Positions 13,411 through 45,990 of a DNA stretch of 62,421 nucleotides are shown piece after piece. Position 1 is the stretch's first letter. Each line of letters opens with the position of its first letter. The stretch spans positions 72,417,260 through 72,479,680 of the forward strand of contig NC_068982.1 in the NCBI RefSeq assembly GCF_001194135.2, given 5' to 3'. A program made the translations under genes and the position numbers. The DNA comes from Octopus bimaculoides. Its lineage: Eukaryota. A model generated the notes under the pieces. That model was not told where the DNA came from. It saw only the letters and a list, made by a program, of their open reading frames with translations, and did no database searches.

Positions 13411-14537
13411 TTTTTATTTATTTACCAAGGCCTATTCCCCATAGGAAGGAGTAGCCACAAGACACATACCAGGCATTCCATTCATTTCCCAGCTCAAAGA
13501 GGTGAGCCCCGTCCTATGCTCAGGTCAAGGCATAGAAAGCAACCCCGAATATCAGCAGCAGGGCCTGACAGAATATGCTAGTTTACCTGCGCTGCATCAT
13601 GGTTCTGTACCTTTTTGAGCAACACCAATTCACTCATCCATCCACAAACACTCTCCAAGCTTTCCTATCATTAATAAGCTCTCCAACACCTCTAACCACC
13701 AAAGCTTTCCGCACTCCATCCATCCACACAAACTGAGGTCTGCCTCTGGTTCTGCTGCCTACCACTTCTGCCTTCATCACTCTCCTTACCATCCGCTCCT
13801 TGTCCATCCTCTCCATGTGGCCAAACCACCTCAACATTCCTCAATCCATTCTGGTAGATTTTCTCTCATTCCTACTCGCCTTCGCACCTCATTTTTCCAT
13901 GTCACACCAACCATAGCCCTCAAACATCTCATCTCAAACACATCTAGTCACCTCCTTTCCGCCTCTCTCAGACCCCAAGTCTCTGTACCATATAACATTT
14001 TTGGCACACTCATGCCCTCATACACACCTCTTTTCGCTTTCATACTCCACCTTTTATCTCTCAGCATATCTTTCACAAATCCAAGTGTCTTAATCCCCTC
14101 CCTCACTCTATATCCCACTTCTTTAGCCAACCCCCCACCACCGCACGTGACCCCAAGTACTTAAAGACACTCACCTCCTCTAACATCTCACCATTTATAC
14201 TCACATCCATCCTACCAGCCATTCCATCTCCCGAACATCGCATCACCTTACTCTTAGCTACATTCACTTTCAGTTTCCTCTTCTCACACACTCTTCCAAA
14301 CTCTACCACCAGTCTCCTCAGTTGCTCTTCCGAATCTGCCGCCAGCGCTGTATCATCAGCAAACAACAACTGACTCACCTGCCATTTATATCTATTTTCT
14401 GCCACCATTTGAGCTCCCCTGCCAAAAGTTGTAGCATTCGCCTCTCTTACCACGCCATCAATATATAGATTAAACAGCCACAGAGACATCACACAACCCT
14501 GTCTTAAACCCACCTTCACATCAAACCACTCACTCAC
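13411..14537 (-). mobile_element. 5'-truncated RTE LINE of a second lineage, well preserved, flanked by a TSD
   Basis: Translates to GLRQGCVMSLWLFN, QLLFADDTAL, KLKVNVAKSKVM, FKYLGS, MLYGTETW, LRWFGHMERM and RGRPQFVWMDGV. TSD TTCTTGCAGAAT at 13399-13410 and 14538-14549. The tail is TAAATAAATAAAAA. Confidence 0.92.
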
Positions 14538-14869
14538 TTCTTGCAGAATACTACAACTTAATGACACCGCTTATATGGCAGTGACACTCATTTACAACTT
14601 TCACATGAAGTCAAGACAAGGACATACATGCATATAAATACATATATACATATGCGTGTGTGTTTATGTAAAATATACATATATATATATATATATACAC
14701 ATGACTGGCTTCTTTTAGTTTCCATTTACCAAATCCATCCAAAAGGCTTTGGCTAGCTTGGGGTTATATTATAAGACATGCCATGCAGTGAGACTGATCT
14801 GAAACCATGTGTTTGGGAATTTAACTTCTCAATCATACAACCATGCCTGTGTCGATTTAATAACCAAGC

Positions 14870-15422
14870 AACAACTAAAAAGCATTCATAGAATTCTGTC
14901 TGAAAAACAAAACGAAACAAAGCAAAAAATGAGAGAGAGAGAGAGAGAGAAAACCACATTCTGCAAGGGATACTCAATGATAATGCAAAGAAGTACTGAA
15001 ACAAAACAACTGTAATAACAGACGGAGGAAACAAAAGAACTGATACCAATTTTGGTATTTTGGCATATGATGTATTTTTTATTTATTTTTCTTGTTTTTG
15101 TTCTGGTCTTTTTTTAAATCTTTTAACTTATTTTTTTTTTCTCTTTTAAACTCGTCTCAATAACAGTTTATTCTATAGTTTTTAGTTTTTTTTGTGTTTG
15201 TAAATATGAATCTGGTTGCTGTTCCTACTGGAGGTAAAGGGTTTTCGTTTTTTTTTTGTTTTTGAAAATTTTTTTTTAACATTTTTGTTGCTGTTCTTGG
15301 TGGTGTGGGTATTTTTTTTGTTGATAATCTCCTTGTGAGTCAGAGGAAGAAGAAAGGGGGGAAGAGAGTGGTTTGGGTTGTTTTTTTTTTGTTTGTTTTT
15401 GTTTTGTTTTTTGGTACCAATG
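14870..15422 (-). other. Possible 3' UTR (or intron start) downstream of the ORF
   Basis: A-rich low-complexity tract on the minus strand with no recognisable TE. AATAAA occurs on the minus strand at 15172-15167 and 15087-15082. Confidence 0.3.
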
Positions 15423-18400
15423 TTACTTACCAGAGTCTGTTTGACAAATCTGCACACTGGCAGTGTTAGCTAATGGGGAACTTTGAGTCTGATGTAACCG
15501 TTGGACAGTCTCCTCTAGGCTCCTGCAAGGTGACTTAGTCGGGCCAGATGCCAAGGGGTTACCAGGTCGTTTCAGAGACGGGTGTGAAAGAATAGAATTC
15601 AGCTGTGGTTCACTCAGTTTTTGAACGTCGGCCAAGCTTATTAAAGGTACAGCTGTCACATAGCTGCTGTCACCGCTGTTGTTGACCAGATTTCCACTTT
15701 TGGCTCTGTCCGATGCCACAGCAGAAGAATTGGTCACTGTAGCAGCAGTGGTGACAAGTGTTGGTGTGAGAGTTGGAGGTGCTCGGGGAGGAGATGCTGC
15801 TGCTGCTGTTGATGATGACGACGATGGGGAGAGTGCTGCTGTTGATGAAGCAGCTGCTGTGGAAGGACTTGTTGAAGACACTACCGACGACTGCGAGTAG
15901 GAAGATGTCTTTGGGGAAGTCGACAAAGTGCTGTCTTTCGGTCCGTTGCTCGATCCCGGCACTGGAGAGCCATCAGTTGCAGTGATGACCACCACAGACG
16001 ACTTTGTACTGCAATCGAGAACAACATCGTCACCGTCATTCTCCGCAATTACTGGTAGAGGAGTTGAAGACGATGGCGATGATGTAGTGGTACCAGATGC
16101 AGCTGAGAGAGGTGTGGATGATGTTGCTGTTGTGGTGGTGGTGGTGGTAGTAAGAGAGTTAGGGTTAGAAGGAAGGGAATTTAGAGAATCACTTTGGACC
16201 TTCTCAGTGTCAACAGTAGGAGTTTGTTGGACTGTATCACTAGCAGAGTTAGATGATACAGAAGCTGTGTCCTGTCCTTTGCAAAACATGTAAGTCAACT
16301 GTGGGAAGTGGCTTTCTAAGGTACCCAGCTTTATGATCTTATTGCACTTGAGAACAGAAACTGGAAGACTGTAGTACTGAATAAAAGCCTTTTCCTCTTC
16401 ATCAGTACAGGTCGTGAGAGGAACCTTCAGTACATTCTCTAGAGCAAATAGAAACTCATTCATGCTGCACTGTGGGTAGTACAACTTGCAGACGGCTTCT
16501 ACCAATGCATAAGAACCACTGCGGTTAGGTGAGTTAATGCATGATATACTTTTGCCACGCAAGAAAATGCTAGATATGTGCTGCACAAGGGCTGAATCCA
16601 TGGGCTTTGATACTGGCTGTTGAGGTTGTGAATCTCCTTGAACCGATCCTGTCGCTGTTGGAGTTGAAGATAAAGAATACGAAATCTGTTCAGCTGCTGA
16701 AGCTTGTTGTGAAGATGATTGCTGTTGTTGGGGTTGCTGTGAAGATGACGGCTGTTGGGAGACCTTATTGGTTGTCGGCACGGGCGACGATGAGGTGAGG
16801 TTGATGGGTTGCACACTGGATGCATGCAGCACCATAGAGTTGGCTGAGATACTGTTATGGTTTGAAGATCCGGAACCACTTGCTGCTGCTGCTGATGCTA
16901 TATTTTGGATGTTAGATGCCAATGTCCGAGAGTGAGATTTGTTGACACTACTACTCACCACCATGTTAGGACTGGGGACAGTAGAGTGGGCTGCTACGGC
17001 TTGGCTAGCAGAACTGGCTTCATTGGGCCGTGTCCACAGTCCAGCCACAGCAGTGCTTTGAGTGTCTGGAATGGAGAGCAACTGCTCGTATATACTTGGT
17101 GGATGGTGGCCTTGAGGCAATGATGGTGCTGTTGTGACAGGAATGTTGCTGATGGGATGGGGATATGATGCAGATGATACAGGCATACGTACAGATGAGT
17201 TGGCTTGAGTGTAGCGGGCTATGTTGGCATAGTTCCCAGGTAAAGAACTAACAACGGCGTTCCATGCCTGGGATTGGTGCTGACTGAGGGCGCTAAGGAT
17301 TGGTCCACTCGATGCATACATATTGGCCGGATTAGAAATAGATGGCGAGGGTAGCCTTGGTAGTTGGCTCACAAGGATATTTTGACTAGTTTGATGGGCA
17401 GATCTCTGGTGGATAACTGACTGACCACCAGTTGCCTGCGATACAATTGAAGGCAAGGATTGGGTAACAACATGTCCTTTTGTTAAAAAGCTTTTCAGTA
17501 CATGAAGAGGGTTATGTTGCTTTGATGTAGGCAGTTGGCTAGGGTTTGGCAAGCCATGCTGGTTAGGATTGGCCTGCTCAGATTGCAGCCGGCTATTTCC
17601 CAGTAGGGAATTGGAAGTACTAAAGTTTGCTCGTTGTTGTTGTTGTTGGAGTGATTGTTGTTCATTACTGCTGGGAACTTTCAAAGGTAGTTGTTGTTTG
17701 GCAAAATTTAGGAAGTTTGGGTTCAGTCCACTTGGAATGACTATATTTGGATTAATAAGATTGTTTGTCATGGGTGACCGAGTTGGGTTTCCTCGTGGAC
17801 TGGGATTTCTGGGATAGGGGGGCAATGCAGTATTAAATGGATGCATAGCTTGTGTACTTGACAGAGCTGAGGAAACTGAAATATGGGAAGGGAATGCACT
17901 TAAGTGCGGAGGAGGGGGAGAAGAAAAGTTTGAGTTTTTAGTAGGGTTACCACTGAAGTCTATATAGCGAGCATGTGTGAGAGGTTTGTCCTGGGGCAGA
18001 TCAATTATTAAAGGGTTGTGGTATGTCTTGATAGTATTCAGGCTTACCAGCTTGGTACTTTTGCAAAATGAGAAATTGAAACCAGCTACTTTGCATGTTT
18101 CGTTCAGCATGTCACACTCTATTTTCGTTGGAGGCTCACCAGTGATTTGATTATCAGCTAGTAGGCCAGCAGCATAGCGTATCACAGACAAAGGAACATA
18201 TTTTCCACCATTAGACCGTTCAACGTAGGGCGTGATGGTGTTGTTGATTTGCAGCCAGCCACAGTAGTCCATAAACTGAGGCCGGTCGGACTTGCGTGGC
18301 AACGACATATCATGTGCCCTGGTATCCTCTTGCTGGTCTTCAGTAGGAAAAGACTTTTTCACGATGTCGTGGAACTGCTCAAACTCCGCCATATTAACGA

Positions 18401-19106
18401 TTAAATCTTGTGTAGTAAACAGCTGTTTGCCATACTCATAGCTACAGTGAACTGTGTTTATTTCATTCAGAAGTTTGGCCTCGTGTTCAGTAATGAAGTA
18501 ACTTGTCAGAGGATCCCTCTTACCCAGCTCATCTGGGAACGAGTTTGGGTACCGGCTGAACAGTTTCACTTCCACTATGCGTACACTCACAAATTTTTTA
18601 TCCTCTCGAAATATGAAAGGAATGTTAATACCATCAATAGTGGTCCAACCGAAGACACCCTTAATACTGGAAATATCAATGCGTTTCTCCAGGGCTTCCA
18701 TGGCTTCTTCAGAGAGTTTGTCAGAAGACTTGGTGCTGGCCAAAGACTGTGTGTGGCTAGCAGCCACAGCGGCAGCTGGGTTGGCATAGCTGCTTGTGTT
18801 TGACGGCGACCGGCTAGACAACACATTGGAGGATGATCGTTGATGGTTGACTGGTGCCGCTAACCGACTGTTGGCGTTCTGTGAGGGTTGCTGTAACTGC
18901 GTTGATAGCGAACTGACACTTCCACCACTGCTACCACCGCCACTGCTACTGCTGCTGCTTGCATTATTATTATTATTATTGTTATTGTTGCTGTTGTTGT
19001 TGCTGCTACTGTCTCCACTTGGGGTATTACTGCAGGCTACAACAGCACTGCTGTCACTTTCATCTCTTGGTTCTGCCTTTATCTGAATCGGCATATTCGG
19101 GATAGC
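15423..19106 (-). CDS. Large coding exon of an uncharacterised, probably nuclear, low-complexity protein with three divergent Ski/Sno/Dachshund-like domains
   Basis: Uninterrupted 1229-codon frame with higher GC than its flanks. The track's 'start' (TTG at 19112) lies inside a splice acceptor (T-rich tract + TTGCAG|GCT), so the exon starts at 19106 and the first in-frame ATG is at 19094 (MPIQIKAEP). The frame ends TCTG|GTAAGT-AA, either a phase-1 donor at 15430 or a TAA stop at 15425-15423. Globular islands lie at about 18350-18660, 18020-18270 and 16285-16580. Confidence 0.93.
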   Translation of the reverse strand, partial: AIPNMPIQIKAEPRDESDSSAVVACSNTPSGDSSSNNNSNNNNNNNNNASSSSSSGGGSSGGSVSSLSTQLQQPSQNANSRLAAPVNHQRSSSNVLSSRSPSNTSSYANPAAAVAASHTQSLASTKSSDKLSEEAMEALEKRIDISSIKGVFGWTTIDGINIPFIFREDKKFVSVRIVEVKLFSRYPNSFPDELGKRDPLTSYFITEHEAKLLNEINTVHCSYEYGKQLFTTQDLIVNMAEFEQFHDIVKKSFPTEDQQEDTRAHDMSLPRKSDRPQFMDYCGWLQINNTITPYVERSNGGKYVPLSVIRYAAGLLADNQITGEPPTKIECDMLNETCKVAGFNFSFCKSTKLVSLNTIKTYHNPLIIDLPQDKPLTHARYIDFSGNPTKNSNFSSPPPPHLSAFPSHISVSSALSSTQAMHPFNTALPPYPRNPSPRGNPTRSPMTNNLINPNIVIPSGLNPNFLNFAKQQLPLKVPSSNEQQSLQQQQQRANFSTSNSLLGNSRLQSEQANPNQHGLPNPSQLPTSKQHNPLHVLKSFLTKGHVVTQSLPSIVSQATGGQSVIHQRSAHQTSQNILVSQLPRLPSPSISNPANMYASSGPILSALSQHQSQAWNAVVSSLPGNYANIARYTQANSSVRMPVSSASYPHPISNIPVTTAPSLPQGHHPPSIYEQLLSIPDTQSTAVAGLWTRPNEASSASQAVAAHSTVPSPNMVVSSSVNKSHSRTLASNIQNIASAAAASGSGSSNHNSISANSMVLHASSVQPINLTSSSPVPTTNKVSQQPSSSQQPQQQQSSSQQASAAEQISYSLSSTPTATGSVQGDSQPQQPVSKPMDSALVQHISSIFLRGKSISCINSPNRSGSYALVEAVCKLYYPQCSMNEFLFALENVLKVPLTTCTDEEEKAFIQYYSLPVSVLKCNKIIKLGTLESHFPQLTYMFCKGQDTASVSSNSASDTVQQTPTVDTEKVQSDSLNSLPSNPNSLTTTTTTTTATSSTPLSAASGTTTSSPSSSTPLPVIAENDGDDVVLDCSTKSSVVVITATDGSPVPGSSNGPKDSTLSTSPKTSSYSQSSVVSSTSPSTAAASSTAALSPSSSSSTAAAASPPRAPPTLTPTLVTTAATVTNSSAVASDRAKSGNLVNNSGDSSYVTAVPLISLADVQKLSEPQLNSILSHPSLKRPGNPLASGPTKSPCRSLEETVQRLHQTQSSPLANTASVQICQTDSGK
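15425..15430 (-). promoter_or_regulatory. Consensus 5' splice donor overlapping the last codons and stop of the ORF
   Basis: Minus strand TCTG|GTAAGT, a perfect GTAAGT. Confidence 0.6.
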
Positions 19107-19135
19107 CTGCAAATAAACAAAAAAATAAAACGTTT
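19107..19135 (-). promoter_or_regulatory. 3' splice acceptor of the large exon
   Basis: Minus strand reads ...AACGTTTTATTTTTTTGTTTATTTGCAG|GCTATC, with AG at 19108-19107. Confidence 0.85.
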
Positions 19136-20040
19136 CTATAAATGTTACTTAATATATTATCATTAAAATAATACTGAACATTAATTCAGATTCAAAAAAA
19201 TTAATCACGGCTGCAATAGGAGCTAGGTCTTAAAAGACTGTTTCAAGTACAAAGACAATAGTGCTATGAAGAGAAGTAGTTAAGATATTGCAATAAATTT
19301 CAACAGTTCTACTGATATCTTAATCCTGATTAAATTAAGACATCCTTATGGGAACAGAGTATACTTAGCTTTGTGTATGTGCACTTGAGACACAAAAACT
19401 GAGTCGACTCATTTTTGACAGTGGGGTACTTTCCATTGTTCCTATGATGGAGCACACACATTTTATTTTTACTAACCAATAGAAAGAGGTTGCTAAAACT
19501 GATTTGCATATGATTAACATGTTACATCACCAGAAAAAATTTAATATGTGCAGGGAGGGATAATATAGAAAATGGTTGTAAGAAGACAGTACCCAGAGGT
19601 AAATAATGAAAGTCCCTTTTGGGAAAGAATTACTTTAGACTAATTTTTATTAAGTTTAAATTTCCATGAATTGTTGAAGAACCACAACTGATAGAGACTC
19701 AAAGACTCCAAACTGACTGATACAGAGACAATAATGGGTAAACTTTCTAAGCTGCTACTCATGAGTGAAGTATGATTTCATAACTTGTAAACCATGCCTT
19801 GGCTGCTTGTTTTAGGTGTCTATGTCATCATAAGCAGATATAAACACCTTCTTGGACCTGCTACCCATGACCACCCTCGAGGATGTTATAACTAGAAAGA
19901 GAGAGGGCTGCATGAATAGTTAGCTAGCATTCATTTTCTGCTGAGTAGACTGGAATAAAGTGAAATGGAGTATTTTGCTCAAGAACACAATGCAGTGCCT
20001 GGTCCAGGAATCAAACGCATGACTACAATCACCTTAGCTG

Positions 20041-45069: not shown

Positions 45070-45329
45070 ACATGTCTCTTAAAGGATAGAGCTCAAAATC
45101 AATGCATTGAAGATACTTTATTGCAGCAACAATTATAATAACAGAAACAACCACAATAAGCCAAACCTATGCACATTTCAATAGGGTATCCCGGAAAAAT
45201 AAACCACATCATAAGATGTCTCGTAAAATATTGTAACAAATTACAACATATTACAAATTTCTGGATACTCCATCTCATCAGGGTCGCATTATTGCCATCA
45301 CCAATACTATTATTAGCAATAATACACAT

Positions 45330-45990
45330 CTCTACTTTGATGACGCCCCACAATTTCTGCAGTAGAGAAGCATAATATGCCCCATTAATTGTGGTGCCCT
45401 TTGCCAGAAAATCTATCATCACTACTCTGCACCGGTCACAAAAGACTGTGAGCATCACCTTGCCTGCTGAGGATTGGACACGAAACTTCTTTGGAGGGGG
45501 TGAGTTATCATGCTTCCATTGCTTCGAGTGGACTTTAGTCTCAGGTTCATAGTGATGGACCCATGTTTCATCCTGTGTGATAAGTCTGCCAAAAAAGTCC
45601 TCCTCGTTTCCTTGCACATTGCCTAAAGAACCTGGGAGCAATTGATTCTTTCTTGCTTCTGAAAAGGTGTGAGCATCCAGGGAATCCATTGTGCAAATAA
45701 CTTTCACATGTGCGGATGGTTGTGAACGATTTTTTCCATGGACTCTACACTTATCTCCACTTCTTAGGCTAGTTGCTGATGATCTTCCAAAATGGTAGCT
45801 TCCACTTTATGAATGGTGTCGTCCAGGAATGGGAGCAGTTTCCACTGATGTCTGACCACATTTGATATGGTGATACCAGTGCTTGACTACATCGTATGAT
45901 GGTGCATCATCACTATAAACTTTCATTTCATTGAAAGTCTCTTTTGGTGTATGACCTTTCAACTGCCTCCATTATAACACCATAGTCCAC
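45330..45990 (-). mobile_element. Decayed mariner fragment (probably irritans/Himar1-like)
   Basis: QWIPWMLT (WVPRxLT), RLITQDETWVHHYEPETK..SKQW, SAGKVMLTVF and GTTINGAYYASLL. Confidence 0.85.

Follow-up and report, generated by a model that had tools for sequence, protein, structure and literature searches.

Locus and coding sequence

The window, a stretch of 62,421 nucleotides (nt) of Octopus bimaculoides DNA (RefSeq assembly GCF_001194135.2, contig NC_068982.1, positions 72,417,260 to 72,479,680), carries on its minus strand a gene for a protein in which three islands, named D1, D2 and D3, are predicted to be divergent copies of the Dachshund-homology domain (DHD). We call its product the tri-DHD protein. 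Proteins of the Ski/Sno/Dach superfamily have a central place as co-regulators in TGF-beta/BMP signalling and in the retinal-determination network, and until now the superfamily has been viewed as a few families with one DHD each.

The minus-strand interval 15423..19112 is a single open reading frame (ORF) of 1229 codons. Translation probably begins at the ATG at 19094 and yields a protein of 1223 amino acids (aa) that opens with MPIQIKAEP, in agreement with the N-termini of relatives (MQTMQIKAE, MTMQVKEE). This translation is identical to the deposited protein P0161, called as one gene of 3672 nt on CM046602.1 of the O. bimaculoides assembly GCA_001194135.2. The orthologues from O. vulgaris and O. 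sinensis, both autonamed "mucin-5AC", have 99.3% identity and the same N- and C-termini. The features of the gene are collected in table 1.

Table 1. Positions in the window of the tri-DHD coding sequence (CDS), its domains, motifs and flanking signals
Feature	Position	Strand	Remarks
Tri-DHD protein CDS	15423..19094	-	1223 aa, then TAA stop (15423..15425); gene call with one coding exon
D1, first divergent DHD (predicted)	18339..18680	-	aa 139-252
D2, second divergent DHD (predicted)	17955..18281	-	aa 272-380; tandem duplicate of D1
D3, third DHD (predicted)	16269..16601	-	aa 832-942; closest to canonical DHDs
N-terminal psi-K-x-E motif	19071..19082	-	I5-K6-A7-E8; matches the SUMOylation consensus
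C-terminal motif KRP..(P)xxK..[KR]xLEExVQ[RK]L	15495..15572	-	aa 1175-1200; basic patch resembling a nuclear localisation signal (NLS), then a short helix-like motif
Splice-acceptor-like site	19107..19130	-	polypyrimidine tract with AG; 12 nt 5' of the ATG; read directly
Consensus 5' splice donor, GTAAGT	15425..15430	-	overlaps the stop codon; read directly; perfect consensus

Beyond the genus Octopus, BLAST finds conservation only at aa ~125-385 and ~830-945. The three islands lie where a reading of the letters without database searches (the sequence-only reading) had placed them, within an otherwise Ser/Gln/Asn/Pro-rich protein. After D1-D2 and after D3, BLAST finds short motifs and no conserved island. 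The other ~870 residues are made up largely of Ser (22%), Pro (10%), Ala (9%), Thr (8%), Asn (8%) and Gln (7.5%), and the protein as a whole is mostly disordered (~70%). Tandem Repeats Finder returned zero tandem repeats in 15400..19200, so repeat arrays do not account for the low-complexity regions. Homopolymer runs occur in the disordered parts on the minus strand, namely poly-Asn at aa ~32-44 (18960..19010) and poly-Thr at aa ~982-989 (~16125..16150), and O. bimaculoides and O. vulgaris differ in the N-terminal region by three indels, located in homopolymer-type sequence. The plus-strand GC skew at 16001..18000 is +0.30, the maximum in the window; it reflects the C-rich coding strand and fits the S/P/T/A/Q-rich composition of the protein's disordered middle part.

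Sequence evidence for the DHD islands

Profile comparison (hhalign) leaves no doubt that D1 and D2 are duplicates (99.1%, E 1.7e-18), and they have a GW..I start in common, as the sequence-only reading had pointed out. D3 can be tied to known DHDs by several routes. Among 60 diverse D3 orthologue sequences, each scanned singly, nine matched the Pfam family PF02437 (Ski_Sno_DHD), weakly (best E 1.6e-4), and this was the sole Pfam family matched by more than one member. A D3 profile searched against the PDB matched the SKI DHD chain 1sbx across its full length (E 0.58). A DHD profile was also built from PDB-verified DACH1, SKI and SnoN sequences together with 120 PF02437-annotated proteins; it is DACH-dominated (number of effective sequences, Neff, 2.6) and of limited sensitivity. 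Against this profile D3 reached 83.8% probability (E 8e-6, 83 columns), with 21% over 27 columns for the reversed control.

The tandem pair connects to known DHDs through D3. D2 aligned with D3 along its whole length at 60-66% (~79 columns), a merged D1+D2 profile aligned with D3 at 79% (E 1.5e-5, 91 columns), and the merged D1+D2 profile aligned with a merged D3+DHD profile at 83%, with reversed controls at or below 1.3% in both merged comparisons. When 178 family proteins were searched with a DHD hidden Markov model (HMM), filters off, all of the 40 weak domain matches fell within the islands (3 in D1, 2 in D2 and 35 in D3) and none in the remaining half of the residues.

Most of the motif pairings proposed by eye in the sequence-only reading hold in these alignments, and the SKI and DACH1 sequences that it had used match the PDB chains 1sbx and 1l8r. 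The pairing of D3 LRGKSISC with Ski LEGETISC agrees with the profile alignment, which adds DACH LRGAKVAS, and the register of D3 TCTDEEEKAFIQYYSLPVSVLKC against DACH VCNVEQVRILRGLGAIQPGVNRC and a 23-residue SKI segment is reproduced. The D1 segments IDG and EFEQFH align, through D3, with DACH LRG and DFETLY. For D2, the proposed match of TKLVS with DACH CKLIS was recovered in a weak local alignment only.

Predicted structures and fold

The AlphaFold2 model of D3, made from a 60-sequence alignment, has a predicted local distance difference test (pLDDT) score of 94.2 and a predicted template modelling (TM) score of 0.85. A Foldseek search of the PDB with this model placed solved DHDs exclusively in the top 12 positions (3eq5, 1l8r and 1sbx; probability 1.00, TM 0.68-0.79, root-mean-square deviation (rmsd) 2.1-4.6 A). 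The best match was SnoN 3eq5 (E 8e-4, TM 0.79, rmsd 2.1 A over 94 columns), and DACH1 1l8r and SKI 1sbx gave TM 0.72 and 0.70, both at probability 1.00. The next match after the 12 DHD entries had E 0.13, and the weaker ones include APSES and INI1 winged-helix domains. In the joint D1-D2 model (50 sequences) both domains are mostly above pLDDT 90 and the linker is disordered. The same DHD entries fill its top 12 (probability 0.99-1.00, TM 0.61-0.70; later matches at probability ≤0.13), the search having been run on the joint model and leaving unreported whether D1 or D2 aligned. Since D1 and D2 are mutually homologous (99%), we extend the match to both domains.

The DHD is a globular alpha/beta domain of ~100 residues; in its published topology helix alpha-3 is inserted in the beta-4/beta-5 wing, and the fold is related to winged-helix domains (PMC2944819). 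Secondary structure assigned by DSSP to the D1 and D3 models runs beta1-beta2-beta3-alpha1-alpha2-beta4-alpha3-beta5-alpha4, with a short alpha2 in D1, and the D2 model has the same element order with alpha-2 not clearly formed. The element order of D1-D3 is thus that of the DHD fold. On these predicted structures all three islands are divergent DHD-fold domains, D3 with independent sequence evidence in addition. The sequence-only reading had proposed the Ski/Dach fold for all three and had named comparison with the DACH1 and SKI domains as one way to check it; the structure predictions and the Foldseek rankings of both models bear the proposal out.

Family and taxonomic spread

A D1-D2 query retrieved ten unnamed homologues, and a trimmed profile of these ten was searched exhaustively against 1.84 billion cluster representatives. 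It matched 779 representative proteins at E ≤1e-3, of which 306 were at E ≤1e-30. In all but one of the best 150 of the 779 matches there is one matched stretch, usually near the N-terminus. D3 is present in ~110 of 178 sampled family proteins, nearly always near the C-terminus (local jackhmmer). The protein belongs to a large unnamed invertebrate family, in line with the D1-like segments in unnamed invertebrate proteins that the sequence-only reading had mentioned. Members with a named source come from Octopus, Haliotis, Gigantopelta, Mytilus, Solemya, Owenia, Paralvinella, Tubulanus, Lingula, Anopheles, Drosophila mauritiana and Idotea, that is, from molluscs, annelids, a nemertean, a brachiopod, insects and a crustacean. 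All are protostomes, none is characterised, and their database labels are "uncharacterized", "hypothetical" or "mucin-like". This spread of D1-D2 and D3 indicates that the D1-D2...D3 architecture is conserved at least across protostomes.

Some members carry a further domain upstream of D1-D2. Long isoforms from Haliotis (P0016 and others) have an HMG_box at aa ~11-115 (E 3.6e-15), and P0152 has a THAP domain at aa 7-83 (E 1.9e-20). As read from these sequences, the fusions suggest a DNA or chromatin context for the DHD cassette.

The sole fly sequence recovered was D. mauritiana XP_033172440, and a gene name for the D. melanogaster orthologue was not found. The tri-DHD family did not come up in a literature search for extra DHD families, multi-DHD proteins or a fly orthologue with a name, and the D. 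melanogaster orthologue may have been studied under another name; one apparent match concerned the "dac chromatin domain" and is irrelevant. Pfam holds no model for D1 or D2, and structure-based resources may already flag these domains. Overall, the fold is known, and the triple-DHD architecture and this family appear to be undescribed.

Conserved residues and proposed function

Helix alpha-3 of D1 bears the family-invariant motif LLNEIN..H, and the other invariant positions of this domain are VR.vE in alpha-1, a G and an F in the alpha-3/beta-5 loop and DL.V in beta-5. Psi-KxE is the established SUMOylation consensus, and the copy at aa 5-8 is a candidate SUMO site. When searched for as a pattern, M-x-[IV]-K-x-E turned up in the N-terminal region of 11 family members; in 10 of them it sits at the N-terminus itself or no more than a few residues away. 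In the Drosophila member, VKQE occupies aa 33-36. At the C-terminus the basic patch is a putative NLS. The regular expression for this region matches 23 listed sequences (3 near-identical Octopus orthologues, 14 Haliotis isoforms or orthologues, 1 from Gigantopelta and 5 unnamed relatives). The KRP...LEExVQ motif is present in P0011 too, and within the tri-DHD family ..LEExVQRL is restricted to molluscan and unnamed relatives.

We consider it likely that the tri-DHD protein is a nuclear co-regulator working as a multivalent scaffold, a function that we infer. The protein is probably nuclear. Its only conserved folded parts are the three predicted DHDs, the tandem D1-D2 towards the N-terminus and D3 towards the C-terminus, set in ~870 disordered residues. 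Each DHD would dock partner proteins by its groove face (alpha-1, alpha-2, alpha-3/beta-5 loop and beta-5), on the model of the SKI and SnoN DHDs, which serve as docking sites for N-CoR/SMRT, among other factors. Activity and localisation would be modulated by the disordered linkers, the N-terminal SUMO-consensus site and the C-terminal NLS-like motif. Targeting to DNA or chromatin would come via partners or, in some lineages, through fused DNA-binding domains (the HMG box in Haliotis and THAP in one member).

N-CoR is among the partners bound by the DHDs of SKI and SnoN, and SKI/SnoN do not bind DNA (PMC2944819). The family medians of net charge are -1 for D1, +1 for D2 and +1 for D3, and the octopus domains have -3, 0 and 0, against -3 for SKI, -2 for SnoN and +3 for the DACH-dominated DHD set, net charge being a crude proxy. 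Unlike DACH alpha-2, alpha-2 of D3 (NEFLFALENVL) has no basic residues. In D1, conservation is strongest in alpha-1 and alpha-3, in the alpha-3/beta-5 loop and in beta-5, and all of these elements but alpha-3 line the SnoN groove (PMC2944819). Taken together, the near-neutral or acidic charge, the non-basic alpha-2 of D3 and the conserved positions of D1 favour protein docking over DNA binding, and the HMG/THAP fusions with the conserved psi-KxE and basic C-terminal motifs fit a nuclear regulator. The sequence-only reading had spoken of a multi-copy Ski/Dach-fold regulator family; the multi-copy fold stands, and "regulator" is still a putative label.

Some points weigh against the scaffold reading, apart from the crudeness of the charge measure. 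Function is inferred throughout, and the HMG and THAP fusions are possibly gene-model artefacts. The DHDs of DACH1/2 and SKIDA1 bind DNA sequence-specifically (PMC13538051), so a scaffold-only reading may be wrong.

The main alternative, which we hold to be rather unlikely, is that the protein is itself a sequence-specific transcription factor, with one or more DHDs, for instance D1-D2 as a bipartite module, touching DNA by the winged-helix-like face. The structural relationship of the DHD to winged-helix domains (PMC2944819) speaks for this, as does the implication of the SKI/SNO/DAC-like domain of DNTTIP1 in DNA recognition (PMC11115230). Tandem DNA-binding domains are common in transcription factors, and the APSES and INI1 DNA-binding domains are among the lower Foldseek matches of D3. 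High-throughput systematic evolution of ligands by exponential enrichment (HT-SELEX) cuts both ways, having yielded motifs for DACH1, DACH2 and SKIDA1 and none for the other four of seven human DHD proteins (PMC13538051). Against DNA binding, the charge of D1, D2 and D3 is close to neutral or acidic where the DACH DHD is basic, alpha-2 of D3 is without basic residues, and the separate HMG or THAP domains of some lineages would be less needed if the DHDs bound DNA. A wider proposal, in our view unlikely, is that tri-DHD proteins are an unrecognised ancient family of developmental transcriptional regulators, at least protostome-wide, in which D1-D2 would be a new bipartite DNA or chromatin reader and D3 would recruit co-repressors. 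If true, this would make them a third major branch of the Ski/Dach superfamily beside SKI/SKOR and DACH, with an unstudied Drosophila member for genetics.

Domain identity and orthology

The DHD assignment itself has to be weighed against a generic resemblance, to winged-helix, APSES or KilA-N-like domains, or an artefact of AlphaFold, in which case the islands would not be homologues of Ski/Dach DHDs. Several results count against the assignment, beside the joint-model search mentioned above. Pfam scans of the whole protein, of each island and of the D1-D2 block gave zero matches at E ≤10. Among 50 D1-D2 orthologues there were zero Ski_Sno matches, and no Pfam family was matched by more than one member. 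Taken alone, D1 and D2 each score <1% against the DACH-dominated DHD profile (hhalign), so that their assignment is drawn from predicted structure and from the link via D3. The CLPQ motif is absent, the aligned positions reading ALVEA in D3, VSVRI in D1 and VPLSV in D2. Most SnoN groove residues are unconserved in D1-D3; the canonical groove remnant is LP....C in the alpha-3/beta-5 loop alone, in D3 of the octopus/Haliotis type only. PDB sequence searches (phmmer and the D1-D2 profile) returned low-complexity or chance matches only (Mucin-2, a kinesin and Ku70 SAP), sequence identity to DHDs is 7-19%, and the Foldseek E-values are modest (8e-4 to 1e-1).

We nevertheless judge a generic resemblance very unlikely. 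DHDs fill the top 12 positions for both models, with APSES and other winged-helix domains far below (probability ≤0.38, TM ≤0.44), and the element order includes the DHD-specific alpha-3 insertion (PMC2944819). The sequence evidence for D3 is independent of the models (Pfam on orthologues, the 1sbx match, hhalign and the DHD HMM), and the reversed-profile controls fail. Because there is no Pfam match and neither CLPQ nor most of the groove residues are conserved, we file D1-D3 as divergent members of the DHD superfamily and not as members of Pfam PF02437.

Even less credible is a divergent orthologue of a characterised DHD gene (SKI/SnoN, SKOR/fussel, DACH or SKIDA1). The fold is in common and D3 keeps the SKI-like ISC, CT and LP...C, but the protein has three DHDs against one, and the whole-protein Pfam scan finds neither the SKI Smad4-binding domain nor the SKIDA1/EPOP C-terminal region. 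O. bimaculoides also has a separate canonical DACH-type DHD protein, P0250, which is 83% identical to the DACH1 DHD. In insects the tri-DHD family co-exists with dac, Snoo and fuss, going by the Drosophila gene set. These observations agree with the sequence-only reading, which had set the protein apart from SKI, SnoN, SKOR, DACH and SKIDA1 as a separate family. SKIDA1, moreover, is reported to be vertebrate-born (PMC8864842).

A secreted mucin, as the autonames "mucin-5AC" and "mucin-19" imply, can practically be dismissed: S/T/P-rich composition, a weak low-complexity match to Mucin-2 and the database names point that way, but the N-terminus MPIQIKAEPRDESD is hydrophilic and shows nothing like a signal peptide, Pfam finds no VWD, cysteine-knot or other mucin domains, there are zero tandem Pro/Thr/Ser repeats, and the conserved parts are solely the predicted DHD folds, known from nuclear regulators. 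The autonames on CAI9717586.1 and XP_029650706.1 (Octopus) and XP_033172440.1 (Drosophila mauritiana) are low-complexity artefacts.

Gene boundaries and flanking sequence

The acceptor-like sequence upstream of the ATG reads ttttatttttttgtttatttgcag/GCT (in shorter form ...tttttttgtttatttgcag/GCT), with the acceptor at 19106, and implies at least one upstream exon, either 5' untranslated or alternative coding. The reading frame is open across this putative junction. The junction-region sequence AIPNMPIQIKAEP resembles Haliotis FLNMPVRMKPEP, which in Haliotis comes after the HMG-box sequence. A tblastn search of the window with the Haliotis N-terminus found no HMG-box exon, and only a weak match at the exon-junction region. 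Assembly gaps (N runs) are present at ~31.35-32.4 kb and ~44.7-45.1 kb, with long X stretches in the ORF translations, and any upstream exon inside them would be invisible.

At the other end of the gene, the stop codon lies within the donor consensus (CTG/GTAAGTAA) at 15423..15431, which makes possible an alternatively spliced isoform with a different C-terminus. Annotated orthologues all finish at ...QTDSGK, that is, at the same stop, and use of the donor is thus unproven. About 0.9 kb downstream of the stop codon, an ORF fragment on the minus strand (14106..14567) matches the reverse transcriptase family RVT_1 (E 3.6e-15, profile positions 112-203 of 205) and is a truncated retrotransposon remnant. 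A second minus-strand ORF fragment (45102..45707) matches a partial DDE domain of the mariner-type Transposase_1 (E 1.1e-14) and adjoins an assembly gap.

Implications

A tri-DHD family reaching from octopus to Drosophila expands the Ski/Dach superfamily with members that have been mislabelled as mucins and whose octopus domains are invisible to Pfam. The analysis corrects this recurring annotation error ("mucin-5AC", "mucin-19") and points to an unstudied, genetically tractable fly gene. Such very divergent DHD sequences could also be useful for separating DNA-binding from protein-binding features, a question reopened by the 2026 Codebook results.

Comparison with known systems

The DHDs of SKI and SnoN (1sbx, 3eq5; PF02437) are the best structural neighbours of the octopus domains, with TM up to 0.79 (rmsd 2.1 A) for D3 and up to 0.70 for the D1-D2 model. 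They have the same alpha/beta fold and element order and the same acidic-to-neutral domain charge, and D3 retains G.SISC, C(T/N) and LP....C in register. In SKI and SnoN the DHD is a protein-docking module (for N-CoR and others) within a nuclear co-repressor, a role that the octopus protein may share. The differences are substantial. The octopus protein has three DHD copies against one, its domains lie below Pfam detection, ~70% of it is disordered, and CLPQ is replaced (LVEA in D3, VSVR in D1, VPLS in D2). Compared with SKI, SnoN and SKOR, it is without the SAND-like Smad4-binding domain (c-SKI_SMAD_bind; Pfam, E ≤10) and without a coiled coil.

The DHD of DACH1/2 and Drosophila Dachshund (1l8r) also has the same fold (TM 0.71-0.72 for D3 and 0.62-0.64 for the D1-D2 model), and D3 reaches 84% against the DACH-dominated DHD profile (hhalign). 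DACH is a nuclear developmental regulator, to which the octopus protein may be likened. The DACH DHD, unlike D1-D3, is basic (+3), and it binds DNA (PMC13538051). D1-D3 are 10-14% identical to 1l8r, and the octopus has its own DACH-type protein in P0250. The C-terminal DD2 of DACH is not among the whole-protein Pfam matches (none at E ≤10), no search aimed at DD2 having been made.

SKIDA1 resembles the tri-DHD protein in being long and largely disordered, with an N-terminal DHD as its main folded module. It differs in having one DHD plus a C-terminal PRC2 (SUZ12)-binding region in common with EPOP, and in its reported vertebrate origin (PMC8864842); the octopus protein is without the PRC2-binding region (Pfam), and its family has a non-vertebrate distribution. 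The list of single-DHD families in the sequence-only reading (SKI, SnoN, SKOR, DACH and SKIDA1) was incomplete, since DNTTIP1, a subunit of MiDAC, also has a SKI/SNO/DAC-like domain. This C-terminal domain is, like D1-D3, highly divergent and DHD-like, lies outside the classic five families of Pfam and works within an HDAC co-repressor complex (PMC11115230). DNTTIP1 was not among the top 50 Foldseek matches of D3 or of the D1-D2 model, and it has a single copy, together with a dimerisation domain and an AT-hook, where the octopus protein is predicted to have three.

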